A stretch of DNA of 64,000 bases from Chlorokybus atmophyticus (taxonomy: Eukaryota > Plantae > Mesostigma and Chlorokybus algae), in assembly GCA_009103225.1 (NCBI GenBank), contig RHPI01003169.1:1-64000 (forward strand), read 5' to 3'. The translations under genes were made by a program, and so were the position numbers. This document shows, in pieces, positions 44,940 to 63,250 of this stretch; positions within the stretch are counted from its first letter, which is position 1; each line of letters begins with the position of its first letter. The notes under the pieces are model-generated. The model saw only the letters and a program-made list of their open reading frames with translations. It searched no databases and had not been told where the DNA came from.

Positions 44940-46011
44940 CCAACTGTGTGGGGGACCGTTGATGCGGCAGTCATTGCACTAATACTCCCACATCGGCACC
45001 TTGTCCAATGGAGGGTCAAGGCAGTGATAGTGCATGCCTTGGCAGCCTTTGTATCACAGCATCACCGGGTCGTGGTCAACACTGCCACATCTCTCGCAGC
45101 GGGTGCTTCGCAGCGGTCGAGGTTGCTGGATTTTGCCGAAGTCAGCGATGTGGGGAAGATGACAGGGCGCGCAGTTCACCATGTTGTCCTTTATGCGCTC
45201 GCCTTGTTGTCCCAGAAGGTCCAGTACTCATGTGGGATACACCTTCGATACCTTATAGACAACGCGCCCAACGGAGGTGTCGAGGGTGTTGTGTGTGGTC
45301 GGCATGCGGTAGAAGAAGTCTCCTGGCTGGAAGCGGCGTTCTCGCTCCTTGTAGAAACCGCTGCGCACACGCTCGTATTGAAGCGTGTTGCGGTGCTGAG
45401 CGATGCGCAAGTTGTGAAAGGCCATGGGGACAGTGTGCTCGAACAGCGCGCTGTGCACTGTCAGATCATACAGCATCTTGTCGGGGTTGTCGAGATTGTC
45501 CACCACTCTGACGACCTCCTGCTGTGCGCGGAAAGGGAGCAATGGCTGTCTTCCAACTAGCAGATAGTACGGGCTGTACTCCCGCAGTGCTGCCTGCTTG
45601 GACAGCTGGTACCCCAGTGCTACCCATGGGAGGTGGTCATCCCATGTGCTCTTCTCATAGTCGGAGGACGTACTTGCGCAAAGCCTTCTTGATGGCCTGC
45701 ACGGTAAGCTCAGCGAGATGATCAGCTTGTGGATGGTCGCGTGAAGTATGGCGGTAGTCGATGAAGCATCTGTCCATGAGCTTGTCAAAGGGCTCCTCTG
45801 AACTCCGTACCTTGGTCGGTGATGACTTCAGCACAGCTGCCGAAGCATCCGAGTCAATGGGAGAGGAAAGCCTGGGCTACTCCCTCGCTGCTCTTGTCGG
45901 GCAGGGGCACCAGCTCCACCCACTTGGAGAAGTGCTCGATCATGACGAGAATGTAGCGGTTGCCTCGTGCTGAGGGCGATAAGTCCCCGAGGATGTCCCC
46001 AGCGGTAGAGT
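44940..46011 (-). pseudogene. Ty3/Gypsy integrase core and C-terminal PHD finger (3' half of the split pol)
   Basis: LYRWG..DILGDLSPSARGNRYILVMIEHFSKWVELVPLPDK; AERTVQAIK; WDDHLPWVALGY..SPYYLLVGRQP; then CERCGSVDHDPVML*YKGCQGMHYHCLDPPLDKVPMWEY*CNDC (PHD, 44967-45098). Stops and frameshifts are present. Confidence 0.88.
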
Positions 46012-46197
46012 CGTCGCAATATGTTTTCCCTGCCGGCCGACTAAATATTGGCAACGGCCGTGCACCTGAGGACATTAATTTAGACTGTCGTGGCTCAGGC
46101 CACCTGTAATCTTGATATAGGGACCTAACGCTAACTGCCGTTACTATAAGGCCCTTTTTGTTACAATTTAGTCTTTAACATTTAACTATGCCTAACC

Positions 46198-46490
46198 AAC
46201 AGGCGCCTGTTAGTTACCTATCAGGCCTTAACAGGTGACTATATATAATTAACAGGCACCTGTTAGTCACACATCAGGCCTTAACAAATGACTTTGTGTA
46301 ATTTACAGGCAACTGTTAGATACACATCAGGCCTTATTAGGTGACTACAACTAATCAACGGGCACCTGTAAGTTACACATCAGTCTTACTTAGGTGACTC
46401 AGCCTATGTGACAGGCACCTACAGGTTACACACCAGTCCAGCGCAGGCGTCTAAGCCTAATTCACAAGCACCAACTAGGTAATTATCGAC
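46198..46490. repeat. Subterminal tandem repeat, 53-bp period, 5 clear copies plus 1 degenerate
   Basis: Units start at 46198, 46251, 46304, 46357, 46410 and 46463. Approximate consensus AACAGGCACCTGTTAGTTACACATCAGGCCTTAACAGGTGACT plus an AT-rich spacer. Confidence 0.9.
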
Positions 46491-46832
46491 AAAATAAGGC
46501 ATTCTTTAACAACTGAAGGTGACTAATGCCTAACTGTCGTCATATGTATTTGCATAGCTTGACTACACGCGACTGTCACTGACTTCCAGCATTGTTATGT
46601 GCATGTGCTGTGTACATGTACCTGAAATGTGTACAGTGTCTCTCAGTCACTTGCCAAGGCTTGTAGTTCGATTATGTGACTCGAATGCAGTTCTGCTGTA
46701 TATCATAGGGATGCAAGTATTGATGTGCATGAGCATAATGACGATTGACTGAGCTGGTTTAAGATGCACAACACTCAGTCACAAGAGCCTTGTAGCTATG
46801 TACACTACCAGCTAAACGGACTACCAACTGCG

Positions 46833-48660
46833 CTACAGCTCCTCTCCATCATCGCTGGTCTCGTCATTACGGAACAAAGCACCACGCGCTGGGGCCTGTG
46901 GAGGAGACGCCGGAGCTTGCTCTTCCTCCTCAAACGGTTGTGCCAGCCAATCAAATGCCGCTTCTGCCTCAGCGAGCGGGTCACGAGCTGCTGTCTCTTG
47001 CGGCCGGCGCCGATTGGGATCTTTCATGTATTCGACACAAGATGCAGTGCGGTGTTTCACAAGGGTGAATGGCTGGAGGGCTGCGTACCGTTGCCTCATC
47101 TCCCGCTTCATTGACATGATCATGGTGTTGATTTCGCTGAGGTACTCTTCATGTGTGTCTATACTGGCAGCTAGGAGAGGGTCTCCATCCTTGCCCTTTA
47201 GGATGCGCTCCACTTGCGTAGTTTACAGGCATGTCTTAGTGGCATCGAAAGTCACTATTCACTGCAACGCGTCTGCAAGCCTGTAGTTTGGGGCTACAGC
47301 ATTCCTATATTGCTAATGATGGAGTTCAGAGTGCTCACCGTAAGCAACAGGTATGCGAGGTGGTTGACTGTCAGCTGCCGGCGACCAGGTGTAGTGACGG
47401 CGTAAGACCAGCATTGCACGATCATTTGCCAGATTATGGGATTGCCCCATTCATGGATGTATCTCTTCCGCTCCGGGTCTGCAGTGTCGGTCACCTCAAA
47501 TGTCCGCCATGACTTGTCTGCGACAGTCATACCGACAAGGCATTAGGCACGAAATACATAGTTCAAGTTGAGCCTGCACCAGGCTAGAATAGTGCCTGTG
47601 ACTTACTTTGGAGCGCGTTGCGCATCTGGGCTTTTTGGGTCTCGGGGTCCATTAGGGCGTCGATGTGCCTGATTGAATCGGTTACAATAGGCGAGATGAG
47701 TACGTGTGTATGGAGGCTGAGTAAGAAGGCAGTGTTGCATAGCAGACATGGTGGTGAGGGACCCAACTCACTTGCGCTTGTTGCTGTTAAACAGTGTCCA
47801 CTTGTACTCCTTCTCAAGGACATGCTTGATCTTGGTGACGTTCTCAGACCGGACCTGCGTAGCTTTCTTCAGGGCGACACTCCAGTGGAAGGGGCACTCC
47901 TTGGGAGTCCAGTACACCTCATAGAACTTGGCCGCATCGGCCTCGTCGTCATGGTCGAAGCCAACTACCTGTCACGGGCAGGTTGGTCAGTGTCACGGTG
48001 CAGTGCGGTCATGAAGCATTCACAGCACCTGACACATGACGTTACGAATAGTGTCCTCCTTGGGATAAACGTGGCTCTCTACCCAGTGGCCGTTTATGAT
48101 TTCAACGACGGCATCTCGCAAATGCTGTCCACAGAAGAACAATCCGTTACACACATACACACAGTGTCACAGTGTCACACAGTGCTTACCTCGTTGCCAA
48201 TCTTCCACTTGCTTGGGGAAGGGTTGCTGACGGCCGAGGTTGCCACGTCACGGCCAAATGCGTTTGGGTTGGGGGTTCCAATCGACCCTCTGCAAGCACA
48301 ACCACATGAGTCATGCTGCCAGCCATGAAAGATGCAACCCTCACAGTTGCAAAAGAAGAACAACGTGCACAGTGTATCCAGAACGCATGCAGTGAGTCAC
48401 TGTGCTAGTCATGATAGAAGCAAGCATCCAAGTTAGAAGTTGAGCAAGAAGCAACGTGCACAGTGCATCAAGAACGCATGCATTCTAGCTTGCCCTTGCG
48501 ACTGCGGTGTCAGGTGGAGTTGTTGTGATGTGCTGGGCGTTAGCGCGGGGTCCTGCTGCGATTGGTTGGCGACGGTTGCCTGGTTGAACACTGGGGGCAA
48601 TGTGGACAACTGGCGCCGACCTCCACGACGAGGTGCACTTACGGATGGACCACGAGGCAT
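46833..48660 (-). CDS. Transposon passenger ORF-L, multi-exon hypothetical protein
   Basis: ATG at 48660 (MPRGPSVSAPRRGGRR). GT-AG-bounded open exons: HLRDAVVEIINGHWVESHVYPKEDTIRNVMCQ | VVGFDHDDEADAAKFYEVYW..KYKWTLF-like | HIDALMDPETQKAQMRNALQ | DKSWRTFEV..NHLAYLLLT | acidic tail ending at 46833. No family recognised. Confidence 0.6.
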
Positions 48661-49079
48661 CTCTCCAACTGATAGTCGGGTGCCGCCTGTTTAGCTGTAA
48701 GTGGCGCTGCCGCCTCCAACGCTGCCGCCGCCGGTTGGCCCGCCCGAATGTATGAGGCGCGAAAACGAAAATGAGGCGGTTTTGAACGTCTAGAGTCCCG
48801 CACTATAGTCGCACTTGTAGTGCGTCCTTGCTCCTATGGTTGATGGTACGACTAATACTTGATGGTACGACTTATGCATTCGTGCCATCCATGCTTCATA
48901 CAACCATTGGTAACAATGGTTGTGTCGTAACATATATGATACGACAGAGGCATCTCTCGTCCAACCCCAGCAATTGACGTACAATGGCTCTGTCATACCA
49001 TCCATGGTACGACAGAGGCATTGCTCGATCAGCCCAAATGGGAGTTAGCGTGCACTCACCCAAACACGCTGCATTGATG

Positions 49080-52000
49080 GCCGGATGATGGCACGCAGGG
49101 GCACCAGGTCGATGACGGGTCGAATGTCAGGCTTGATGGGCCTGGGTTCGATTAGGAGGTTGAGGACCAGGAGTCGGAGGAGGCGGCGGCGGCGGCGGCG
49201 TGGCACATTATGCGAGAAGTTGTGGTCGTAAGAGTTCAAGCAGCGAAGCCAGCTACTACCGGTCGCCACGTCATGAATCATGGCAGGCGTCAACAATGGG
49301 GCTGTCAAACATGCATCACCAACATTGGACAAACCAGCAGGCAAGCCATTAAAGACCATCTTCACACAGAGAGCTGCTTGGTGGCTCGCTTTCTGCAACA
49401 AGGAGTGGATCAGGAGTTGCAGTCCTTGGAGCCCCTTGTCACAACCATGCGGGACTGATTGCGGCTGTGGGAACAAGCACAAAGGAATGCAGAGGTACGC
49501 TCAACAGTCACATGCATTCCTTGCAAGAGCAATTTGTTTTTTAGCGCACTCCATGTGATATATGTAGCGTGGCTGCAGGCCTCCACTATTCACCCATACC
49601 CACCCTACAGTCAAGCCGACATTGCGGAAGCAAGAGCAGAAAGACAGAGCTGGGCGGCGGTATGTTGTTGCCAATCTCGCTGTGCATGTTGACTGCAATG
49701 TCGGCTCCAATGCATGCCTGCCTTTGCATGCTAGGATGTGCGTGAGCGTGCGAAGTCGCGCGCGCGTGCCGAACGAAGTAGGCTGGGTTTGAGCACAGGA
49801 GCGCGTGGCCATTCGTCCGGCATTCAACCAATAGTGCATCAACCAGCAATGACGCAGTCCATGCAATCATTCGTGCATCAACCAGCAATGCCGCAGGTGA
49901 CTGTTCGAAGCAACCAACTGATGACGGTGTGACGCAGTTGACTATTGCAATTGCAGTGTCGCAAGCATGCAGCTAACCCACATGTGATTGGTTGACAGCA
50001 CCACAGTGCACTAGGTCCTGTTGGAGCTCCTATGCAAGCCTGGATTCAATCCCATCAACTGGTCCTTCAATCCCACTTGCTGATGGGCGCGGCGGCAATG
50101 CGGCATCAGTTTAACATGCATGTTGGCCTATTGAATCCCGACATGTCCATTGGGGCAGTGGCGCATGATGTGCCCATGGCTCACGAGCTCCGTGACGAGT
50201 CTGCCTACGAGGGTGGCGGGGAGAGTGCAGCCAATACCATCTTGTCAGCCCCCATGGCTTCCCCTGCTCCATGCAGCCCACGGGCCATTGTTGTAAGTCG
50301 CTGTCTTTTATGCTCGTGCCTTGGTAACAATGCGTCAGGCACTGCATAAGCTTATATTCGTCCTTTGCAACATTGTGAGCCATCTTATCCTGGGTCCTGT
50401 ATACAGCCCCCCTTGCTGCATGCACAAGTGGTCTCACCTGCAGCTCCTGCTCCCCTCTCAGCCAGAGCGCAACCACCTTCCGCGGCACCAGTCCTTCATA
50501 CACTGCCATCTCCTCCACGAGCAGCACCGGTGATTGCGGGGCAACAATCCTTCTCGCCGCCACCGGCGAGACAGCAGCACAATGCAACAACCAATGTGGC
50601 TTCTGCACCTAACTTACCCCACCCGCTGCAAGTTGAAGCCGGCAGTCTGCCCCAAACTCAAGTACTTTATCAGTCACTGTGACTCTTGCCGTTCACAGTT
50701 GAACACACCATGTGAGTGCTGTATGCGCATGCAGCAGGGGTCACCACCTGCCAGCGAGTCATCAGAGGAGCTGGCCGCAACCCGCATACGGCCATCAGTC
50801 ATGCTAGGTGGCCAGCTCGCCTCATGGGACCACTTCAATGCGCCAACGGATGGTAATTGCTTCTACCATTGTGTATTTCGCGCCAGGCCATCCATAGCGC
50901 AAAGTGTCCTGGATGATCACAAGTGCCCCAGCTCGAGCAGATTTTGGGCCATGCTGGACACCATGGACGACGACGGCAGGGGGCACACTCTCCGCAAAAT
51001 CACCGCCAAGGCTGTCGATGCAGGCGTGGCGAGCAGAATCCTAGACTTCTGCAGAGCCACTGGTGCCGCGGGAGAGATGGCGCAGTATTACGACAAACTG
51101 CCTGCGACCATGTTGGCTGATATCAACTGCAACATTGACCTAGCCATGGCCAAGGTGCGACAGATCGTGCGGAGAAAAGATGTGTACGTCGAGCACCTGC
51201 AGATGACCATGTTTGCCAACAAGCTGGGCTTGTTGATTGGCTGCGTGACCGTTCAGCGCGAGCATGGGGAGTGGGTGCCACGGCCCGGCAGCGCAGTTTG
51301 GGTTGGAAATAAAGAAGCCCCCAACTCAGTCCTGGTGGTGGGCAACACTGCTCCTGATGAGCCAGAAGCACACTTTTGGCTCCTCAAGCCTGCAAGCACC
51401 GAACAGTGGTCGTGGCCTATGCATGAAGTGCCACCGGAGGTAACACACCTGATCGGAGAGTGGCGGAATGGCGTTGCCAATTCCCCGCTACCACCGGCTG
51501 TGACCCAAAGTGCTGCGCCAACGCCTCAGGCCTCGCCTTCGTGTGCTAGGCAAGAAGTAGCCGAGTGTTCTGCACATCCTGCCTCCCCTCAACCACAGCC
51601 ACATGCTCGCAATCCCAATTCAGCACCCTCCCTTCCTGCCGCGGAGACTCACTTGCCACCGCACTCTGACCATCCGGAGGCATCTTCATCAAGAAGCAGC
51701 TGTAGCTCTCCCTCTCCCTCCAAGCTTGCCACATTGATCCCAGCCTGTCTTGTTGGTAAAGAGATTGATCGAGGTGTCCTGAAAGCTGCGCTGAAAGACA
51801 AAGGCTTCATGCTTGACCTCATGAAGCAACATGAGGTCGTGGAGAAACGGGAGGCAATCAACAAGCGCAAAGCTGTGGAGCAAGAAGATAACGCCTTACC
51901 TCCTCTGAGTGACAGTGCCACGGAGAGCGCCTGCCAGGATGTGCAGGGTGACAAAAAAAAAAAGAAGAAGGTTGTTGGAACAAAGGACGCTGACAGGACC

Positions 52001-53122
52001 AAAAAAGGAAAGGTGAGGCATCGTTACAACATTAGAAGAAGCACAGCACCTTGAAGCCTCACTGGGGCTGACTGTGTGTCCTGAGTAGACACAGGCGGGT
52101 TTACAGCGTCAAGTGGCTGCTCAGCATCGTCCAGAGAGACAGCCGGTGCGGCACGAGCTGCTTAAGCTCAAAGCACCGACACGCAGACGCTTTAAGGGGC
52201 TGACTCGTAGTGCAAAGGAGTTGATCACCCTACAGTACGCCCAAGACGCGCTGCATCACCGCATGCGGCATGCCTCGAGGTGGGTGACGAAAGTTTCCAA
52301 TAAGTGGGAGCAAACGCGGAGAATGCGGTCTAAACAGACCTTTAGGGATTGGCCGTGGTTGGAACCCATACACGATATGGCCATCCGTAGTACGTTGTTG
52401 CCCCTCGCCGTCCTCGATATGATGGTGTTGTTGCTGCCACAGTAACCGGCAATGTGCAAGAGCTATCTGCGGAGCAGAACTTCGACCTGCTGCAGCAGAT
52501 GTACCTGTCGATGTTGACCAATGCGGGTCGAGATGTGTGCCACTACCTGAGCAAACATACTGGGTGGCAAGTAAAACCATTCGAGCTGTACTTGGCATGC
52601 TTTGGCTGGCAGTGGCTGTATGTCATACGGCACGTCGAGCTGATTCTGTGGAAGCTCGAAGAAAATGACGATGCGGGGGAGTACACGAGTGACGACAGCC
52701 ATGTCGAGGGCCTGGATGAACGCATGCTGGACGAGACCACCAAGACCAGCAGGTGGTGTATGGCGGCAGATGGGCGTCAGGTGATCGAGCAGGCAGTGGA
52801 GCGTTATGCTGCGCCATTCAGATGGGAGTCGCTACGCCTGCGACGCGATAACAGAGTTTGGTGGCAGAGGCAGCTTGCACACCCGCGTGCACCATGTGTG
52901 CTGATTTGTCGCATTGAAGAGCCACCCCCCCCAGCGGATGGGGAGACGCCCTGTTGCAAGAAAGCGATGTGCCATGTCTGCATCATAGCACATCAGAAGA
53001 CTGTGGCAAATAAATCAAAGAATCTACAAGCGTGTCCATTCTGCAAGCAACCTCACCCGTTTTGGTCGCCACGCCTGATGCAAGACGCCAACGTGTCGGC
53101 GGTGATTTGGCCCCCGCCTTGA
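49080..53122 (+). CDS. Transposon passenger: OTU-like cysteine protease plus C-terminal RING finger (probably one spliced gene; 5' exons carry stops, start uncertain)
   Basis: OTU: APTDGNCFYHCVFRA (Cys codon 50858) and EAHFWLLKP (His codon 51371). RING-like: CVLIC..TPCCKKAMCHVCI..CPFC. Intron 52013-52094 is phase 0 and in frame; a short phase-1 intron 52387/52390-52442 would join the RING frame. Confidence 0.7.
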
Positions 53123-53604
53123 TGCCAATTGTGCATGTATTGTAGTTTTGTGTTGGCTTCCTGTGAACCATGTAGGTACATGTATAGTTGCAGCATAGTG
53201 CAAGGTGCACCAGAGATCTGCTGTTGTTAGAAGCATTGGCTGTACATGTGTATGATGACTGCCCGGCGCATGAGTCAGTGCATGGCTTGCATACCTCGCT
53301 GGTTTAGAGCGTGGTTGACAGCAACAAACTCGGACAGCGCTCTGGGTTCCATGGCATGACAGCACAGTATTACTCTACGATCGTGGTAGTATGCGAGTAT
53401 CCTTGTACTGTAGTACCATTAACAGATAGAGTACCATTCATGTTGATGTAGTACCATGCATGGTACTGCAATAGCGTATCAGGTACAGTCGTGCTTCACT
53501 TGAAGTTTGACCCATTTAGGTTCGTAAGCTGGCAACCCTAAATTGATGCCCATACCCTAAAGTCTCGCTCAGTTTGTGGGCAGTTGTGCCGATTCCTATT
53601 TTGC

Positions 53605-55331
53605 ATGATGTCGGCGGCAGCAGTTGAATCACCCTCACCTAGGAGACCATGCTTGGTGTGCCCACAATGCAATGCGTACGTATGTGCCAATGGCCGTAGG
53701 CTGCAAATGCGAGCACACTTGATCGATTGCTAGCGAGTGCAGACAGTGTGCCACGATTTTAGTGCTGCTTGCTGGCATCACACCACACACAATGTCGACG
53801 TGTTTGGCTGCCGCCTCGGCCAAGTGCTGTGCAAGGAACCCGAGTTTTTCCATTGCGTGCAGTGCGTGTGCGAATCGTGCTCGCGCTCATGCTTCGAGTG
53901 GCGAGGGGAACCCATGCGCTTCTTCACATGGACAACACCGGGACATGTGGTTAGTGGACAGGTGGTGGATGCTGTGGAGGTAATCCACAAGAGTGGACCG
54001 CGACGTATCACTGCATGTTATGTTGGGCGTATGCTTATTTCATGCATGTTGAAGCTGTTGTCGCATTCAGAGCAGTCTTGCACGGTGTGGGCGTGGGCAG
54101 TTCCACCTGGCCGCTGTAGAGGAGGCAGACCATCGACCGCTGGACAGCGCACTGCATCGGCTGCGAAACGCGGTTAAGTTGAGATGCGAGCAGCTGATCG
54201 GTGTGAGTGTCATGGTGCATTGGCCGCTGGATGGGGAATGGTATGCGGGCGTTGTGGAATCATTCAAGCAAGCATCAGGTCAGCATCGCTTCGTGGCGTG
54301 CGAGATTGAGGACGCATCATATATGCATGGTGCAATGGAAAATGTCTTTGCAGGGCAGCACCGTATAGTATTCGATGATGGTGATCGACCACAAACCATC
54401 AACTTCAAAGGGCACAACGTATTCGCGTACACATCAGTTGACGGGGCACGCCATGTTCTGCGCGCCGGAGGGGAGAACGTCAGTCGCAATGTAAGCCCGG
54501 ACGGCATCATTGTTAGTCCCTGGCCAGCACCACGGCCAGCCTTGACCACATACACGCCATTTGACAACAAGCTGGGACGCACACGCAGACCAAGGGCACT
54601 CGACCTATTCTGCGGCGGTGGCGGTGCCAGTGTCGGTCTATACCACGCAGGCTTTGACGTGACCGGGATGGACATAAGTCCCTCCTCTGAGTACCCGCTG
54701 CCCTTCATACATCGCAATGTATGCACCCTGAGTGCAGGAGAGCTGAGCGAGTACGAGCTCATCTGGGCCAGTCCACCATGCCAAGCCTATTCAGGTGCTA
54801 TCCCGGCACCTCAACGGGCGGCACATGGCACATGCTGGAGACACCAGGATATGATACCGCTCGTCCGACGTCTGCTGCTTGCAAGCCAGGTCAAGTTTGT
54901 GATTGAGAATGTGCCAGGAGCAGCTTTCCGCATTCAGACCCAATCTGTCCCTTTGTGGCACGATGTTTGGCCTATCAACTTTCCGACACCGTCTGTTTGA
55001 GACATAGCCAGTGGTAGCTACCCCACCAGCACGCTGCTCGCACGCGGGCAAGGCAGTTGGACTGCTATCGCCGCACCTATCCGCTAGCGCGAAGAAGACA
55101 ATCGTGACATCAAACACGCCACAGCAGATGTACCCGGTCTATGGCCTTCCAAGCACCAGGGGCGGCATTGCTGCGTGGCAATCAGCGCTGGGAGTGCCAT
55201 GGATGACCTCGGCCGTTTTCATAGCGAATGCAGTTCCTCCCGAAATGGCGGAGGGCATAAGGCGTCTCATGCTTGAAACAATGGATATGCGCTGTGACTA
55301 TCCTCCTGTGTCATGGAACCATCAGGCTTGA
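53605..55331 (+). pseudogene. Transposon passenger: Cys/His-rich region, Tudor domain and phage/bacterial-type DNA (cytosine-5) methyltransferase fusion; 2 in-frame TAG and 1 frameshift
   Basis: Exons 53605-53961, 54101-54278 and 54354-55331. Tudor LIGVSVMVHWPLDGEWYAGVVESFKQASG|QHRIVFDDGD. MTase motifs: I LDLFCGGGG, IV ASPPCQ, VI IENV, VIII LCGTMFGLSTFRHRLFE, X NAVPP. Lesions: TAG 53731, frameshift ~54938, TAG 55005. Confidence 0.85.
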
Positions 55332-55534
55332 GTGTGGTGCACTGTATTGATGCTTAATGCCACACGGCGGACTGATTGTTGAATGTTGCATGGCATATTC
55401 GATTGTGGTGACAGTTGTGTAGTGACAGCTGCCCGGTATTGTACACGTCCACATGCAAAAGTCTTAGCATACGATTAGCAATGCCTAACTGACTGATATG
55501 CTCCAAACTCAGAGTAGTGAGACAACTACATGTG

Positions 55535-58500
55535 TCACGTGGAAGTGCAGTGAACGTTCACCCAATACTTGCCCTCTTGTACACGGGCGCTGTCCTTGTC
55601 AAACATGGGGAGCAGCTGGACAATGCCTTTTACTTGCTCCAGAGTCACGACATCGAGATGTGGACCGCCTCGACGCTTTTCCCATTCCAAAGCGATGCAC
55701 TTTGTGTCGCTCGTCACATCCAGCTTCGTGTACCAGCGGACAAACACGACCTCCTTCCACACGCGCTCGCCGCTACCACCCCACACCACCACGCGCAGAA
55801 AAAGGAGTGCCTGAGCCCACCACGTCACGTTCACACCGTCCTCATAACCTTCCAACTCAAGTGTAGAGATTCAAGGCCGCCCATGGAACATCCCAGTTGC
55901 GCGCGCCATGCTGACTCCTGATGTCATGTACACCGCTGCGCCTCCGTTTACCACGCGAACAGCACGCCACCCGTCGGCCAACTCCAGTTGTTCCCTCCTC
56001 AACCAGCTGTCCAGGGTGGTAGGCAGCTTGTCGGCGAATGGAGTCTTCAAGGCGACTTGGCGGCTACGCGCAAATCCGCTCCAGTACGGGCTGGACTCCC
56101 TCCTTGCCAGCACATCCATCCGTAGCAACTTGTCCGTCTTCTCCATGACGTTACAGCACTGCTGCCGCGCCTGCGCCATGACGGATCGCATCTCGGGATC
56201 CATGACCATGCCATCCTCTCTCACATATTCCGCACAGCTCCATGCCTTCAGGATACGTGCCTGGTAGTCCCGGCTGTTGCCACCACGCGCCCACCGTTTG
56301 ATATTTTGGGCGTGCGTCTGCTCCATGCGGTTGGCGCTGAACCAATCTGGGTGTCCACTGCTGACAATTACCGGCCCAAAATGAGTGAGCTGATGCATCT
56401 TCTAGATCTTCCAACCTGACTTCTGTGCAGAATATGACGACAGTAGTGGATGCAACACTGCAGCTTTGAAGGCAGCCAGCTCGTTGTCGGCTGTGGTCAG
56501 GGTCTCTCTTGTGTGTTCGTGCGCCTTGAGCAACTTCTTATTCCACTGGGCAAGCGATGCGGCAGCAATGGTGAAGACATCGTTGCCCTCATTGTCGAGC
56601 AGAAAATCGTCTGCGAGGACCGGCAGCAGCTGCAGCACCGCCACTCTCTCCACCATCTGGAAGAAGTGGTCGGACAGGAAGAAATCTACTGTGCTTGTGG
56701 GTGCCTTGAAGTGCGAAACCCACAGATTCGCCTTGCATACATTCAGCTTGTGCACATGTGCTCGTGAGCACGTGTCATTGGCTTTTGTGTTCAACACAAA
56801 AGCAACACCAAAGACGTGCCTGGCCTGCGGGATCTGTCTCGTGGATGAACGCGTTCGTTCCTTCGCGGCGTCGTACACAGCAGCAAGCAGGTGGTCAATG
56901 ATGCCAGCACATGCATTGCGTCAGGGGCAAGACGAGAGTAGCAGTCAGCTCCCGGCACCCGCGAGTGTCGCCAACCCCACAGTGCATTCTGTTGCCAAAC
57001 CACATTGCCTGGTTTCACGGAAAGCCATTCATCCTCACGAATGCCGATAATTTGACCATTACCTCCTCGACATGCATGGAGTGCTGCTCTTTAAAAGCCT
57101 TTGCTGTCTGGCGTGCATTCTTAACACCGCTATGCAGGTCCGCCCGCAGCTGACGTATTGCTGGTGTGTAGAAGGCCTCGGTTCTCAATTCCCGGTCCTC
57201 ATCCATCTCCAATATATCTGATTTGGTGACGAGACAAACATCGCAAGGATGTCGTGTTTGGTTGCCCGACACAGTGCGTGCGAGTGTGGCAGCCTCCTAC
57301 AACACGACAAACTCAGATGTTCTACTGACAACATCCTCCATGCACTGTGTGCTAGCAGGCTGCATCCGGTTACAACCATTCATGCCCACTACCTGCCAAT
57401 CGCTGATGTAGTTGGCAAGCGCGGGAAACACACGACGCTCGATACCATTCGGGTTGATGAGCTGCAGACCTTCCCAACTTGCCCGCTTCACATCCCCTAA
57501 CACTACATTCAAAGCGTCATGACAAATCTCACGTTTCCGAATGGAGAACGATTCCTTGCCCTGCGCCCAGGTGCGATGCCCGGCCACTGCGTGAACCACC
57601 GGAGAAGCGCTATCATAACAACCCCCATGTTGCTAGCATACATGTCCCAACTGTAGTTGGCAAGCAATGCCATCAGAGGGTAGCCAGAGCGCTTGCCCGC
57701 GCTGTCCAGCGTGGTCTTGTCACTGTACAGAATGGCAGGCGCCAAGTAGGACGCTTCCCCCACCTCTCTCCTCAAATCCACCTCCACATCCTTCCACCAA
57801 TCGCCCGTGGAAGGATGGCCAAAGCTGTGCTCGTCACCAGTGTACTGGAGATTGAAGCCATTGGCGGCATGTGGATTGCCATACAACCGCGCGAGCCATA
57901 CCTGCTCCGACCAAGAGCATTGCTTACTATGCTGGCCTCAGAATAGATACTGCATCGATACTGCATTAGGTTCTGCATTTCACAGATCTTGGCCGGCATA
58001 TATGTGACGCAGATGTCCTGATCCTTTGGGTCTCCAGGCTTGCGCAGGTCAGCCGTCACGTAGTTTTGATACGGCAGCACACTCGCATGTGCATATGTGA
58101 CATGGCTCTGATGGTTGAAGCACATGCACCGCACACCGTGAACACACCTAAGACTGAAAAAGCAATCGTGGTTCGGAGGTAGCTGGCCACATGCACACCG
58201 GTCTCCCACTGGAGCTCTTCCGTCAGGAAGTGTGCATTTCGGATGCACTTGATGATCCGCCCCATGTCGGAGGCCGACAGGCCTTGGCCGTTGTTGCACT
58301 GCACGAATGCCACTGCAAGAGCATGCTCCGAGCCATACCACCTGGATTCCGACGCGTGCGAAGGGACGCCTCCACTTCCATGTTGGCGTGCCACAGGTTT
58401 CTCAGGCACACGCACACATCGAAAGCCCTCGTTCACTTCCTCCTCCTCCTGTTGCTGCTGTGCGTGTGTCTCCTGGAGGAATCCTTCAGCATCAAGCATG

Positions 58501-58670
58501 TGAGCATCCTGGATCGAACTCCCCGGTTCAACATGACCCGCATCGTACTGTAATGGACGCTGGCCGACATACAGCTTGATCTGCTTGCACACCCTGCTGC
58601 TAATAATGTGCATGTAGACCGAGCTGCGTGTGGCGAAGCGCATGTGGCAATACGGACAAAGGACTCCCAT
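55535..58670 (-). pseudogene. Plavaka-type transposase, multi-exon, with a frameshift (~57601) and an in-frame TAG (56402)
   Basis: N-terminal Zn finger CPYC..HIISSRVC; GDWW..PAILYSDKTTLDSAGKRSGYPLMALLAN; HDALNVVL..GIERRVFPALANYISDWQE; CDVCLV; PDAMH; WKI*KMHQLTHFG..DWFSANRMEQTHAQNIK; VFVRWY..IVQLLPMF..YWVN. The motif order matches the Plavaka family as recalled; no HMM was run. Confidence 0.8.
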
Positions 58671-58737
58671 ATCTCACTACTAACGTCGACACAGGTGTCG
58701 CCAATGTAACCTGCATCATATCCAGCAACACGCACAC

Positions 58738-58769
<32 letters not shown>

Positions 58770-58978
58770 GCCACCGCCACCGCTACCGCTACCCTTGCAT
58801 GCCAGAGGCGGGAAACTTGGCCGCCAGTCACTGGCTCCGTCGTACCATTATAATGGTACGATCGAGCCATTGCACGTCCAGGGTGAGTCTCTGGATATAT
58901 ATATATATATATATATACATATATATTCTGATTAAACCGTTTCAATGGTACGAAGATGCCTTTGCCAAAAGGTATAGG

Positions 58979-59020
58979 CATTGTACAAAGGTACCATTGA
59001 AATGGTACCTTTGTACAATG
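58979..59020. repeat. Perfect palindrome, 20-bp arms and 2-nt spacer, between the transposase and ORF-R starts
   Basis: CATTGTACAAAGGTACCATT-ga-AATGGTACCTTTGTACAATG. Confidence 0.9.
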
Positions 59021-59201
59021 GCAATGGCAGTTCGTACCATTGACAACTCTGGCAATGTCAGTCCCCCTGCGCATGAAAACACCATTGATAGCTCCGCCAA
59101 GCTATGCCCTTACAGGGGCGTGATGCCGAGGGTATGTGGCGTTTGGAAGATCGTTGGCGGCGCTGCCAGGGGCGTAGTGGGCATTGTGGTCGAGGTCCGG
59201 G

Positions 59202-60205
59202 ATGAATTCCATGTTCGCACAGGGCGGGCAGGGTGCCGGAGGGGTGTCCTCGGTGTCAAACCCCACCAAGACTACCAAGGGCACATCCAATGACAACAGT
59301 GACTCGGGCGATATCTTACAGGGCTCCCCCTCCGAGTGGGCAAAGGCACACCACAATACCGCCTCTAAGAATATCCGACCCACCAGCAGCTGCGACCACG
59401 GCGACATGATTGAAGGGACCAAACAAGGCTGGCATAACCAAGGTGGGTTACGATGCACTGTCAATGCCACATGCTAGGGTTCTTTTATCTTGCACATGCA
59501 CAGCCTCAGGTATCTTGCACTTGACATACATTGTCAATACCACATGCACACCCTCATGCACAACCTCCAGTGTCATGCACATGAACAGCATGACCAATCT
59601 CGCAAATGCACAGCCTATTTCTACTTGCGGGAGCTCACAAGTCGCAAAAGAGAAGCTGCGGAGTCAAACGAACGGGTAATCCATGACCTAGTTTAATGTT
59701 CCCAGCGGTAATTAAGCAGTATGCTTGCAGATTGCCATGTTGGTCAGAGTGAACCAAGAGCAGCGCGGCAGCCTGACTGTCTGCCTGGCGGAGTGCAACA
59801 AAGCGGAAGACGAGGTAAGCGTGTGTATGCTGATGGGCTAGTCCTCTGGCAGTACGCCACTCTTACAGCATTACCAAATGCAGGTGGTCACTCTCAAAGC
59901 GACCATCAAGCGCATGCGCGTGCACGGCGAGGCGCTGACATTCAAGCTGAANGGAAGACGAGGTAAGCGTGTGTATGCTGATGGGCTAGTCCTCTGGCAG
60001 CACGCCACTCTTACAGCATTACCAAATGCAGGTGGTCACTCTCAAAGCGACCATCAAGCGCATGCGCGTGCACGACGAGGTGCTGACATTCAAGCTGAAG
60101 GACGAAGTAGCCGCTGTACTGTCAGCGAGCGAGGCAGCGGATGAAGATGACTCCGGCGTTGAAGCAGAAGACTCGTCGGAGGAGGAACAGGAGGAGGGGG
60201 TTTGA
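59202..60205 (+). CDS. Transposon passenger ORF-R, small multi-exon hypothetical protein (coiled-coil-like, acidic tail; start uncertain)
   Basis: Spliceable exons AYFYLRELTSRKREAAESNER | RVNQEQRGSLTVCLAECNKAEDE | VVTLKATIKRMRVHDEVLTFKLKDE..EEEQEEGV*. Confidence 0.45.
59805..60099. other. 147-bp direct duplication separated by a single N, probably an assembly join artefact
   Basis: 59805-59951 and 59953-60099 differ at 3 positions, with n at 59952. Confidence 0.75.
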
Positions 60206-60767
60206 GGAGGAGTTCTGAGGCAGGCACCACGGGTTGACAAGCTGCGCATGAGTCCGACAGCTAGACTCAATGTTATAAGGTAGTTTCATGCGCAAGTCGG
60301 CTGCTCAGTTGTAAGTGGACATACTCTCACCACTGCCCGTACATTGTATATATTGTGGGCTTTTAGGTGCAAGACCAAACAATCAGTCCAAGGTTTGTAC
60401 AAGCTGCATGGCATGTTAGTGTTGGCTTACGGCAAGAATTGCCAACTTTTGTCAAACGGCAAGGGTCACATATTAACAGCAGTGTAACGGCATCGAAACT
60501 GCCGGCTATTGCTGTCAGCTGTCCGTAACTACCGGCTAACGGCCGTCTATGCACATCGACCAAAGGGGTAACTGGTTGACAATTCTCGGCCGGTTAGTGC
60601 CACTGACAACCACTTTCGGCCCGCGGCCGTCTGCGTCAGTCCACTTAAGCCAACGGCACCCAATAGTCCAAAAGTAATATTTCGGGCAGCGACAGGCAGG
60701 CTCAGGCAGGCTCAAGCACCAGTCAGTCCCTCAGTCCTTAGCCAGTATCCGTGTAAAATTTGCGACG

Positions 60768-61230
60768 GTAGTCCCGAGACGGGGAGGGGATGCAAGCTGG
60801 TGTTGCGCGTGTTGAGGCTCGCGCAGACCATGTCACACTGCTGGCAGTCGCTGACGAACTCGCGCACCTGTTTGTGCACCCCATGCCACTATTATTGAGT
60901 CCTGACCAGAATAGCCGTGCGCTTGACATCGAAGTGTCCGAGCTCGGTGTAAAGGGCATCGATAATGCCTTCTCGTGCAGCTGGTGTTGGGACCTCCTTG
61001 TTCTCATTCTGTATCTGTTGATACGGTTTGTCGTCGACCCAGCGATAGCGCTAAGTGCGTTGACTGACGCGGTCCTTCTCGCGCGCGCTTATGCCTGTTG
61101 GAAATTTTCTAGTCCGGAGCAGTCGAAGGGATGGCTTGTTAAGCCAGATGTCCGATCGTGTGTTGGTGGGTGCCAACTCCTCATCGTCCACCTCAGGGTC
61201 GGTGCGAGCGCACCGGTAGAAATGGGTTTC
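60768..61230 (-). pseudogene. Ty3/Gypsy integrase N-terminal zinc-binding region (5' half of the split pol)
   Basis: Minus-strand translation DIWLNKPSL..EKDRVSQRT*RYRW..IIDALYTELGHFDVKRTAILVRTQ**WHGVHKQVREFVSDCQQCD..SLHPLPVSGL. Confidence 0.85.
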
Positions 61231-62019: not shown

Positions 62020-62100
62020 GATACAAGTGGTATATATATATAAATACCGCGGTATATATATGTATATATAAAAATATATCTATATCTATATGTATGACCA

Positions 62101-62135
<35 letters not shown>

Positions 62136-62156
62136 ATTTGTATATATACATATACC
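62020..62156. repeat. AT-rich (TA/TATATG) microsatellite
   Basis: Read directly. A roughly complementary (TA/CATA) tract lies at 63421-63541. Confidence 0.85.
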
Positions 62157-62339
62157 GATAGTGCCGTTGTATGCAGCTGTTGGTGCATGCGTGATGCATG
62201 CATTGCGGCACGTGAGACAATATAAGGTAGGCGTGTTAGGTTATATGCTTTACAAACGCGTTGCAGGGTGTATCGTGTCGTCGTAGTCTAGCTGGTCCAT
62301 TGTTAGGTCATATAATGTTGCTTGCTAACCCAACAGGTC

Positions 62340-63250
62340 CTGCCGCGCAGATTCGAAACTCGGCAATGGAGAGACGAAAACCCGTGTGCACCTGTGGCTA
62401 TTTTGGTTTGATCATGCATTAAGTTTAATCCCCTTAATACATGATCCAACCCAATAATAGTACATGTGGATATTATTAAGTTCAAGAAAAGACGGATACC
62501 GAACTTAATGCACACCAGCTAATTGACCTTAATGACAGCTCGATATCAAACAAAGTTGTGGCTGCAGCCGCAAAGAGTGCAAAAATGGATATGTTGCTTG
62601 CATATGAATCCCTAATTAAGTTATAGCTGGATTTCCAATTCATTTATGGGCAAGGCCGAACTGTTGGGGGGCCATTTCTATCGGTGGCGCTTCCTCTGTT
62701 AAGGGGTCTGTGACGGTGACGGTAGGCCTGAGAAGGCATGTCCTCGTCTGCTGCTGCCTCAATGGCCTGGGTCTTGCGTCTTTAATGTAATGCAGCGACA
62801 GCGAACATGGCCGCTACACATGGAAGTGCGGCTGCGCAGCCGCACTTCCATGTGTATGCATGCAGCACCGGAAGAAATGGCCCCCCCAACAGTTCGGCCT
62901 TGCCCTCAATTTAAATGGAGATTTAGCTATAAAATCTATTAGAGAACCGCATGTAAGCAACGTATCGGATTTTGCATTTCACCTGCTGCAGCCACAACTT
63001 AGTTTGGTATCTGACTGCCATGAAGGTCAAGTAGTTCGTGTGCATTAAGTTCGATATGCGTCTTTTTTTGAACTTGGAAAAAGTCCACATCATGTACTAT
63101 TATTGGGTTGGATCATGTATTAAGGGGATTAAACTTAATGCGTGATCAAACCCCAAAATGTTAGGGCCACAGTTCGCGGCAAAAACCCAAACAGTCACAA
63201 CGCAACGGGATTTGCGCCTATGTTGCCGGGTTGCGAACCTGTGCGGATGT
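62340..63250. mobile_element. Non-coding foldback/MITE-like element with long inverted arms
   Basis: 62405-62515 is near-identical to the reverse complement of 63038-63152. Degenerate similarity extends out to ~62343/63247. A perfect 42-bp palindrome lies at 62815-62856 between the arms. Confidence 0.65.

Follow-up and report, generated by a model that had tools for sequence, protein, structure and literature searches.

A giant, decayed DNA transposon of probable Plavaka lineage with a Tudor-methyltransferase gene and further candidate cargo in Chlorokybus atmophyticus

Results

The window analysed here is the whole stretch of 64,000 nucleotides from contig RHPI01003169.1 of Chlorokybus atmophyticus. 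The domain order of the flanks and an empty-site comparison show that positions 46012-60767 are one insertion, splitting a Ty3/gypsy integrase. The downstream half of the split gene (45057-46011, minus strand) holds a decayed integrase core that matches rve at profile positions 10-55 (E 9e-4), with a PHD-like finger at the C terminus, while the upstream half (60768-61050, minus strand) holds the HHCC zinc finger (Integrase_H2C2, positions 36-55 of the 59 in the profile, E 0.011). Integrase_H2C2 on the right and rve, entered at profile position 10, on the left make the flanks neighbouring stretches of a single gypsy integrase.

A perfect 8-bp inverted repeat, CGTCGCAA..TTGCGACG, bounds the element. 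The left copy, CGTCGCAA (46012-46019, plus strand), begins exactly at the integrase homology break, and the right one (60760-60767, minus strand; TTGCGACG on the plus strand) is the reverse complement of the left end. In three public contigs of uninterrupted gypsy paralogues the spacing from CAGCGGTA to GGGGAGGGG is 15 nt, against 17 nt in the joined flanks of the insertion in the window; the target duplication is therefore 2 bp, GT, at 46010-46011 and 60768-60769. This is the size that had been anticipated, and it agrees with published Plavaka families (PMC12730594). Loose contig ends with unlike flanks fall exactly after 60767 in three contigs of set X1 and one of set X5, so that in the public contigs at least four copies with different flanks terminate precisely there. 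The defined ends proposed by the initial annotation thus hold, although its length of 14.76 kb probably needs correction. A 148-bp tandem duplication (59805-60102), whose junction contains an N (59952), is probably an assembly artefact, as a depth-103 contig of X1 has a single unit of this repeat (joint 59933>60082), and the element measures about 14.6-14.7 kb.

Close to the left end we found an array of 53-bp tandem units (46192-46438, about 4.7 copies), each with a AACAGGCGCCTGTTA-type palindrome that is a candidate protein-binding site. Across the 64 kb the octamer ACGGCCGT has two occurrences only (46054 and 60539), each of them subterminal. A low-complexity spacer of (CCG)n and (AT)16 (58738-58926), at which the public contigs break, separates the ORF-R region from the divergently oriented start of the transposase. 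Neither a second CGTCGCAA end pair nor any other internal TIR or LTR pair was found within the element, and hence there is no sign of a nested element.

The transposase (55538-58673, minus strand) has about 1,040 codons and looks essentially intronless. Two of its fragments match PF18759, the Pfam Plavaka family, with 35.8 and 27.1 bits (cut-off 26.3), which bears out the family assignment made beforehand. Plavaka elements are among the DDE transposons related to CACTA/EnSpm-Mirage-Chapaev. The catalytic motifs are kept (D at 57733-57710, D at 56928-56911 and E at 56656-56636) and are collinear with those of the PF18759 proteins P0142, P0148 and P0128; the N-terminal region contains a C2H2/C2HC finger (58658-58587). 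Frameshifts and stops have disrupted the gene itself.

Tail to tail with the transposase stands a methyltransferase gene on the plus strand. Its putative N-terminal part is a Cys-rich frame (53605-54177) with a C2HC-type finger (53659-53730), interrupted by a TAG at 53731 and lacking any family match in Pfam or in further profile searches. It is followed by a Tudor domain of RDM15/PDS5C type (54179-54440), split by a 75-nt GT..AG intron (54279-54353), whose removal improves the match to PDB 7DE9 from E 4.4e-4 to 1.6e-9. The cage residues W, Y and F and both Asp are conserved (compared with PMC8184781). The last part is a minimal phage-type C5 cytosine methyltransferase (54590-55331; PF00145 22.0 bits, phrog_363 76.9 bits), with about 50% identity to phage and bacterial methyltransferases of 210-250 aa and with motif I at 54599, PCQ at 54770, ENV at 54902, RHR at 54981 and the last motif at 55227. 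Both the C5 methyltransferase and the Tudor domain of the initial annotation are in this way corroborated. In the window copy an additional base at 54925 and a TAG at 55005-55007 interrupt the methyltransferase frame.

Co-amplification was measured over 54900-60899. Contig depth does not differ between the methyltransferase gene and the transposase and stays even all the way from the 3' half of the former, across the latter, to the terminus; a diverged contig spanning 55206-55425 bridges the two sides. These data support co-amplification of the Tudor-C5 methyltransferase and the transposase.

Many copies of the element are present in contigs of two organisms, with identities from more than 99% to less than 90% (157 contig pieces in set X1 and 425 in X2). 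The frameshifts at 54925, 56903, 57602 and 58157/8 and the stops at 55005 and 55871 are private to the window copy. Majority copies are free of these frameshifts and of the stop at 55871; in the transposase region they read +CCTC at 56903, +C at 57602, +GG at 58157/8 and T>C at 55871. The copy is decayed, as had been claimed.

The remaining candidate frames all lie inside this single window insertion, and from it the left 8.9 kb counts as cargo. An open frame of 506 codons (50534-52054, plus strand), with a possible first exon at 49156-49455 on the same strand that bears a C2HC-type zinc-finger motif (49303-49377), probably encodes an OTU cysteine-protease domain. The assignment stems from the catalytic motifs, namely the Cys loop TDGNCFYHC (50846-50872), which weakly matches nairovirus OTU, and the His motif EAHF (51365), and from language-model neighbours (atlas feature score of 0.94 with OTU clusters). 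An adjacent open frame (52454-53122, plus strand) ends in a Cys/His cluster (52895-53044; TRIM30 RING, E 0.079) spaced C-x3-C ... C-x-K-x2-C-x2-C-x17-C-x2-C, where 2 of the 8 ligand positions deviate; RING families reach feature scores of 0.87-0.90 to it, and its product can be called only RING-like. For neither frame did we obtain a Pfam match or find sequence homologues, so that the OTU and RING of the initial annotation stand in part, on motifs, cluster and neighbours.

ORF-L (46836-47971, minus strand) consists of candidate exons at 47971-47771, 47542-47297 and 47222-46836, stop-free and with coding-like GC1/GC2/GC3, but has no homologues and no Pfam, PHROG or NCBIfam match. ORF-R (59178-60202, plus strand) comprises candidate pieces that are short open frames only, with coding-like composition confined to 59990-60202, and gave no homologues, domains or family matches. 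The description of five spliced genes was therefore overstated, since splicing is supported for a single intron only, the 75-nt one of the Tudor domain.

Discussion

We regard it as likely that 46012-60767 is a decayed cut-and-paste transposon of the Plavaka lineage carrying a Tudor-methyltransferase and other cargo, the window copy being dead and the family a multi-copy, autonomous giant DNA transposon. The element entered the Ty3/gypsy integrase by cut and paste, duplicating the 2 bp GT. Its transposase would bind the termini and the subterminal repeats, excise the whole 14.6 kb and reinsert it. As for the cargo, every functional step proposed here is read from sequence. A Tudor domain with a monomethyl-lysine cage might bring the methyltransferase to chromatin with low-methyl H3 lysine, as on transcribed gene bodies, and the element may in this way write its own 5mC; its copies would perhaps be dressed like host gene bodies, or its own activity dampened. 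The OTU-like and RING-like proteins could edit ubiquitin marks or remove host factors. Self-regulation or evasion of host silencing, as suggested by the initial annotation, would be a candidate role of this cargo.

Several observations count against this explanation. The element termini are CG..CG, unlike the TGT..ACA and CATCA..TGATG of fungal Plavaka, and the OTU-like and RING-like frames fail Pfam and are without sequence homologues. The usual termini are CA..TG, from which the CG..CG found here also differ. Among the sequencing runs that contain the stretch, none is registered as RNA. The co-amplification measured over 54900-60899 leaves the left 8.9 kb as putative cargo from a single insertion. 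The more distant Plavaka loci, at 33-40% identity, carry none of the element's cargo genes, so that the cargo is lineage-specific.

An unlikely alternative, although the stronger of the two considered, is that a Plavaka transposon captured inert fragments of host or foreign genes (Pack-type transduplication), whose methyltransferase, OTU-like and RING-like frames drift as pseudogenes. The broken cargo of the window copy would fit such drift, as would the same failure of the OTU-like and RING-like frames to find homologues or Pfam families. So would the distant Plavaka loci free of cargo and the finding that no run with the stretch is RNA. However, the methyltransferase frame is open at the family level, given that majority copies are without the 54925 frameshift, and all its motifs are kept, as are the Tudor cage residues and the canonical Tudor intron. 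The 506-codon OTU-like frame also remains open though the copy is about 2-4% away from the majority contigs.

Less probable still is a composite, in which a smaller Plavaka (transposase, perhaps methyltransferase) lies in or beside a second element, either mobile or an endogenised piece of virus, from which OTU, RING, ORF-L and the outer ends would derive: in feature space, clusters from Nucleocytoviricota (giant viruses) are among the nearest neighbours of the OTU-like and RING-like parts, the methyltransferase is phage-like, Amoebidium is reported with Plavaka-flanked giant repeats of foreign genes and the left 8.9 kb falls outside the co-amplification measurement, but the lack of internal end pairs, the restriction of ACGGCCGT to both subterminal regions, the same 8-mer at the right end by the transposase as at the left and a 2-bp duplication as in Plavaka all speak for one element.

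Comparison with known systems

Plavaka has been reported across Archaeplastida (PMC13519894). The fungal Plavaka A and B families, some of them with TET/JBP dioxygenase genes (Iyer et al. 2014; PMC12730594), share with the Chlorokybus element the PF18759 transposase, short terminal repeats and a DNA-modification enzyme as passenger. Their target duplications are 2 bp (A) or 2-3 bp (B), against 2 bp here, and their termini contrast with CGTCGCAA..TTGCGACG. They carry one accessory gene instead of several, and whereas the fungal passenger removes 5mC, the one predicted here would write it. The literature cited beforehand was correct on this association with Plavaka/KDZ (PMC12730594), and likewise on DNMTs in retrotransposons of Symbiodinium and Klebsormidium (PMC5890265). 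The latter, KnitGypsy-Dnmt3 of Klebsormidium nitens and SymbioLINE/SymbioDIRS of Symbiodinium (PMC5890265), also are mobile elements that encode a C5 cytosine methyltransferase of their own, and the genomes concerned are probably of the same kind. They are RNA-mediated, with a eukaryotic Dnmt3-type domain inside a polyprotein, while ours is a DNA transposon whose phage-type methyltransferase, joined to a Tudor reader, has a separate gene that contains an intron. The integrase of the interrupted gypsy element is PHD-bearing.

Among plant Tudor domains, those of RDM15/PDS5C and MSH6 (PDB 7DE9; PMC8184781) resemble the one described here at the sequence level (E 1.6e-9). It retains Trp616, Tyr623, Asp643 and Asp645 of RDM15/PDS5C, with Phe in place of Tyr641 and Pro in place of Glu647, the residue holding H3R2; Asp643 and Asp645 select monomethyl-lysine (PMC8184781). 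The partner is a methyltransferase here, in contrast to a cohesin regulator (RDM15/PDS5C) or a mismatch-repair protein (MSH6). In concept only, VANDAL Mutator-like elements of Arabidopsis are also similar, being DNA transposons with an accessory protein that acts on the epigenetic state of their own copies: the anti-silencing protein VANC, which causes methylation loss (as cited in 10.1101/2025.02.11.637652). VANC is not an enzyme of the type found here, and the VANDAL transposase superfamily differs from that of our element.

Also among the closest known systems are the giant red-algal Plavaka with DNA- and histone-modifying accessory genes, PAG1-3, of Bostrychia moritziana and Chondrus crispus (bioRxiv 10.1101/2025.02.11.637652). 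Both have a transposase of the Plavaka/EnSpm lineage, several accessory genes that are predicted DNA or chromatin modifiers, a very large size (17-19 kb in the red algae and about 14.6 kb in Chlorokybus), internal tandem arrays of inverted repeats and mostly degenerate copies. In the red-algal cargo a SET domain accompanies an N6-adenine methylase and a 2OG oxygenase accompanies a ParB-like protein, and no SET, N6-methylase, ParB or 2OG domain appeared in the element frames scanned. Here, in a streptophyte green alga, the cargo is instead a Tudor fused to a phage-type C5 methyltransferase with OTU-like and RING-like frames. Our literature search found no description of this particular combination, so the novelty first suggested is narrowed: giant Plavaka with chromatin cargo are already published from red algae and fungi, and what is new here is the cargo set.

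Insertion site, ends and target duplication

The sequences flanking the element (46012-60767) are the two halves of one minus-strand gene. Translation of the right flank, WHGVHKQVREFVSDCQQCD...LHPLPVSGL, corresponds to the end of the HHCC finger of an integrase (Integrase_H2C2, profile positions 36-55 of 59), and translation of the left flank, ...GDILGDLSPSARGNRYILVMIEHFSKWVELVPL, to the rve core starting at profile position 10. Since these are consecutive domains of a single gene, the 14.76-kb element has been inserted into a decayed Ty3/gypsy integrase. On the plus strand, the left junction reads ...GGTAGAGT followed by CGTCGCAA beginning at 46012, and at the right junction TTGCGACG ends at 60767 and is followed by GTAGTCCC. 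The 64 kb contain four occurrences of the terminal octamer, including those at the two element ends, which are in inverted orientation.

Contigs from four public sequencing runs were aligned to 54900-60899 at 80% likeness. Three contigs of run X1 stop matching exactly after 60767 and then carry flanking letters that disagree (agreement 0.57), and one contig of run X5 likewise loses the match exactly after this position. Therefore, copies at other sites have the same right terminus. In run X5 (organism D), a 166-nt contig includes no more of the element than its final 66 bp (60702-60767), with telomere-like GTTAGGGTTAGG before it and unrelated sequence after the element end; this may be a terminal fragment beside telomere-type repeats, or a chimeric contig.

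Contigs of gypsy paralogues run from the right flank straight into a homologue of the left flank (...GTCCCCAGCGGTA...) with the element absent. The spacing between CAGCGGTA and GGGGAGGGG is 15 nt in these paralogues, three in number, and 17 nt when the window flanks are joined, and it follows that 2 bp were duplicated at insertion, namely GT at 46010-11 and 60768-69. When 2 bp are taken out, the upstream integrase frame continues into LLYRWG, the usual xxWGxD motif. Target duplications of 0, 3 or 5 bp, including a GGTAG direct repeat, misfit the empty-site length, and only the 2-bp model also preserves the integrase frame into the YRWG motif. The GT duplication, read from three paralogous empty sites, has the length described for Plavaka, which is 2 bp in PlavakaA and 2-3 bp in PlavakaB (Kojima 2025, PMC12730594). 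In this sense, the inverted octamer CGTCGCAA..TTGCGACG, the split integrase and the paralogous empty sites bear out the defined ends and the 2-bp target duplication proposed in the initial annotation.

Neither a second copy of the element nor one of the host gypsy was found elsewhere in the 64-kb window. A PHD-like finger at 45057-45227 on the minus strand (CERCGSVDHDPVML*YKGCQGMHYHCLDPPLDKVPMWEY*CNDC) closes the interrupted gypsy integrase; the broken piece yields no Pfam call for it. To the right of the insertion, the gypsy remnant includes an AT-rich (TATA/TGTA)n microsatellite palindrome and an inverted repeat pair (62030-62160 and 62621-62932); the pair, of 51 nt and 210 nt apart, is a small hairpin or MITE-like element.

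Transposase

Two minus-strand fragments match the Plavaka HMM (PF18759), with 35.8 bits at 57512-57886 and 27.1 bits at 57300-57599. Both pass the gathering cut-off of 26.3 bits, which supports the family assignment made from the sequence at the outset, and no other transposase family gave a match. For alignment to PF18759 proteins the transposase pieces of the window were joined, with X placed at the breaks. The joined protein is collinear with them and contains D, D(xxH) and E in family order (SD.T, PD.MH, E.R..LQ); its catalytic motifs ILYSDKTT, APDAMH and MVERVAV align with SD.T, PD.MH and.EHR..MQ of three family members (P0142, P0148 and P0128). DDE cut-and-paste transposition is well supported.

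Among 1.84 billion representative proteins the transposase core had 38 matches, one at 65% identity and the others at 47% or less, so the transposase lineage is distinct. The 65% relative sits on a 552-bp metagenome contig without context, and a metagenome scan with the transposase core returned no relative. Regarding the termini, 5'-TGT..ACA-3' has been reported for PlavakaA, 5'-CATCA..TGATG-3' for PlavakaB, and CA..TG for most CMCT lineages; the CGTCGCAA..TTGCGACG ends found here depart from all of these motifs, which have been published for fungal families only.

Subterminal repeats and length

Near the left end, at a distance of 180-430 bp from it (46192-46438), 53-bp units that include palindromes (AACAGGCGCCTGTTA) form a tandem array. 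The palindromic octamer ACGGCCGT has just two sites in the 64 kb, at 46054 and 60539, one in each subterminal region. Both the array and the octamer sites are candidate binding sites.

The region 59805-60102 is a 148-bp tandem duplication whose units are 97-98% identical, with an N (59952) exactly at the junction. An X1 contig of depth 103 has a single unit. The duplication is therefore probably an assembly artefact that lengthens the element by 148 bp, and the true length would be about 14.6 kb. No internal LTR or TIR pair pointing to a nested element was found.

Copy number and decay

Over the 6 kb from 54900 to 60899, run X1 contributed 157 contig pieces and X2, another public run, contributed 425, in identity classes from more than 99% to less than 90%. 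Contigs with word depths of about 100-135 occur alongside contigs of depth 3-6. We interpret this spread of depth and identity as a young subfamily, whose members are nearly identical, together with older copies that have diverged. Between the 3' half of the methyltransferase gene (54900-55331) and the terminus, including the intergenic region and the transposase, depth stays even.

The window copy was described initially as decayed, and comparison with the majority contigs proves this right. It has an extra base at 54925, lacks CCTC at 56903, C at 57602 and GG at 58157/8, and carries two stops: TGA at 55871-73, private to this copy (TGG in the majority), and TAG within the methyltransferase at 55005-07. 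After correction of four indels, most of the transposase gene falls in one frame and gives no sign of introns. The frame continues beyond the private stop to about 55538, so that the transposase and methyltransferase genes end approximately 200 bp apart.

Tudor-methyltransferase gene

Both ends of the element were set by one insertion event into a gene, and therefore every frame considered here and below is inside it. The methyltransferase is moreover co-amplified with the transposase, as judged by contig depth. At the more distant Plavaka loci (L003-L005) no homologues of the cargo were found.

The frame at 54053-54997 carries motif I, PCQ and ENV of C5 methyltransferases. After the shift at 54925 the next frame reads LCGTMFGLSTFRHRLFET ... 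NAVPPE ... DYPPVSW, so that homologues are matched end to end and the motif set is complete: LDLFCGGGG (I), SPPCQ (IV), IENV (VI), FRHRLFE (VIII) and the C-terminal NAVPPE. The N-terminal piece scores 22.0 bits with PF00145 (cut-off 22). The phage profile phrog_363 gives 76.9 bits, far more than Pfam DNA_methylase (22) or TIGR dcm (17.6). The C5 methyltransferase of the first reading is confirmed by these motifs and by both profiles. Its nearest relatives are phage and bacterial enzymes of 210-250 aa with about 50% identity, and relatives at 45-52% identity were found on IMG/VR viral contigs. By profile scores and nearest relatives, the enzyme departs from the eukaryotic DNMT1/DNMT3 families, whose closest relatives are eukaryotic and whose long catalytic domain is accompanied by a target-recognition domain.

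Upstream in the gene, VMVHWPLDGEWYAGVVESFKQASGQHR and IVFDDGD lie in the same frame, separated by 75 nt that start with GT and end with AG. The match to the Tudor domain of RDM15/PDS5C (PDB 7DE9) improves from E 4.4e-4 unspliced to E 1.6e-9 with the 75 nt removed, which supports both a 75-nt intron and a Tudor domain. Trp616, Tyr623, Tyr641 (Phe here), Asp643 and Asp645, the residues of the H3K4me1 pocket of RDM15/PDS5C (PMC8184781), are conserved in the alignment; Glu647 is not. The domain therefore combines the 7DE9 match with an aromatic cage and the two Asp residues for monomethyl-lysine, and is a predicted reader. Pfam Tudor models fell short of their cut-offs (22.5 against 27.2), so that the Tudor claim holds by the sequence match to the solved domain and by the cage residues but not by Pfam. 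No homologues of the Tudor and linker region were found among proteins of 173-551 aa.

A relative of the methyltransferase with the same C-terminal DYPP(L/V)S motif (P0002; L002:2-541, 606-1568; Logan contig SRR24908243) has an inserted MBD (methyl-CpG-binding) domain in place of the Tudor domain, and a 2OG-Fe(II) oxygenase frame (E 3.6e-4) lies immediately upstream of it. The locus may represent another reader-writer pairing on a mobile element.

OTU-like, RING-like and flanking frames

In the OTU-like frame (50534-52054, 506 codons), a TDGNCFYHC loop is followed by EAHF at a distance of about 170 residues. Its Atlas language-model features scored 0.94, with OTU clusters in 56 of 100 matches. 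A search against PDB matched the Cys loop alone, to a nairovirus OTU (E 0.6), and single-sequence AlphaFold of the region gave a pLDDT of 38. Pfam OTU (PF02338) had no match at E ≤0.1 in this frame, no homologues of the region were found among proteins of 278-885 aa, and a viral scan with the frame returned no relative. The OTU domain first proposed is thus likely, judging by motifs and language-model features, although Pfam does not recover it.

In RING domains of the C3HC4 or RING-H2 type the spacing is C-x2-C ... C-x-H-x2-C-x2-C ... C-x2-C. The cluster at 52895-53044 agrees with this pattern at six of eight ligand positions; the first Cys pair is one residue too far apart (C1-x3-C2), and Lys replaces the His. 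The match to the TRIM30 RING has an E of 0.079, the language-model neighbours are RING families with scores of 0.90 or less, and Pfam gave no RING match for this cluster. Ligand positions and the TRIM30 match lead us to lean slightly towards the RING identity suggested at first, with Pfam on the other side.

ORF-L consists of three stop-free pieces with coding-like codon-position composition and is weak as a gene; ORF-R is not convincing. Of the five spliced genes initially proposed, the 75-nt intron of the Tudor gene stands, but splicing is mostly unsupported elsewhere and the two flanking genes are doubtful.

Similar C-x2-C-x12-15-H-x3-6-C fingers occur at 49303-49377 (+), 53659-53730 (+) and 58658-58587 (-), each in what is presumed to be the first exon of its gene (OTU, methyltransferase and transposase, respectively). 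They could constitute a shared DNA-binding module that would bring all three proteins to the element.

Discussion

The initial annotation interpreted the element as a Plavaka transposon with a chromatin and ubiquitin toolkit. This is partly supported: the transposase, the ends, the Tudor domain and the methyltransferase hold, the OTU is probable and the RING weak. A chromatin role of the cargo would follow from its domain content. It is possible, although we consider it rather doubtful, that the element belongs to a still-active giant Plavaka family in a streptophyte alga with a complete reader-writer module, in which an H3K4me1-type Tudor domain fused to a phage-derived C5 methyltransferase, plus ubiquitin-editing enzymes, would allow the element to determine its own DNA methylation and chromatin state, for example by imitating host gene-body methylation and thereby escaping silencing. 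On this reading it would be the DNA-transposon counterpart of the DNMT-bearing retrotransposons, built from viral parts. Transposons that encode chromatin enzymes themselves offer a rare opportunity to examine the manipulation of host silencing by mobile DNA.

Plavaka elements occur throughout Archaeplastida, including streptophyte algae (PMC13519894), and giant repeats flanked by Plavaka have been described in Amoebidium (bioRxiv 10.1101/2024.01.08.574619). The literature searched yielded no description of a DNA transposon that combines a Tudor-C5 methyltransferase with OTU and RING. Fungal Plavaka carry TET/JBP genes (PMC12730594); in contrast, the frames scanned here gave no TET/JBP or 2OG match. 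In red algae, giant Plavaka elements bear inverted repeats in tandem arrays and, as accessory genes, N6-methylase/SET and ParB/2OG (bioRxiv 10.1101/2025.02.11.637652). None of the Pfam domains of PAG2 (N6-adenine methylase and SET) and PAG3 (ParB-like and 2OG oxygenase) appeared in the 20 frames scanned here, a search that short or very divergent exons can escape. The 53-bp palindrome array, on the other hand, recalls the inverted-repeat arrays of those red-algal elements.

Before this study, C5 methyltransferases were known in retrotransposons of Symbiodinium and Klebsormidium (PMC5890265), and demethylases, N6 or SET enzymes in Plavaka-type DNA transposons. The present element is possibly the first case in which a DNA transposon carries a C5 methyltransferase that descends from phage and would be guided by a Tudor domain.
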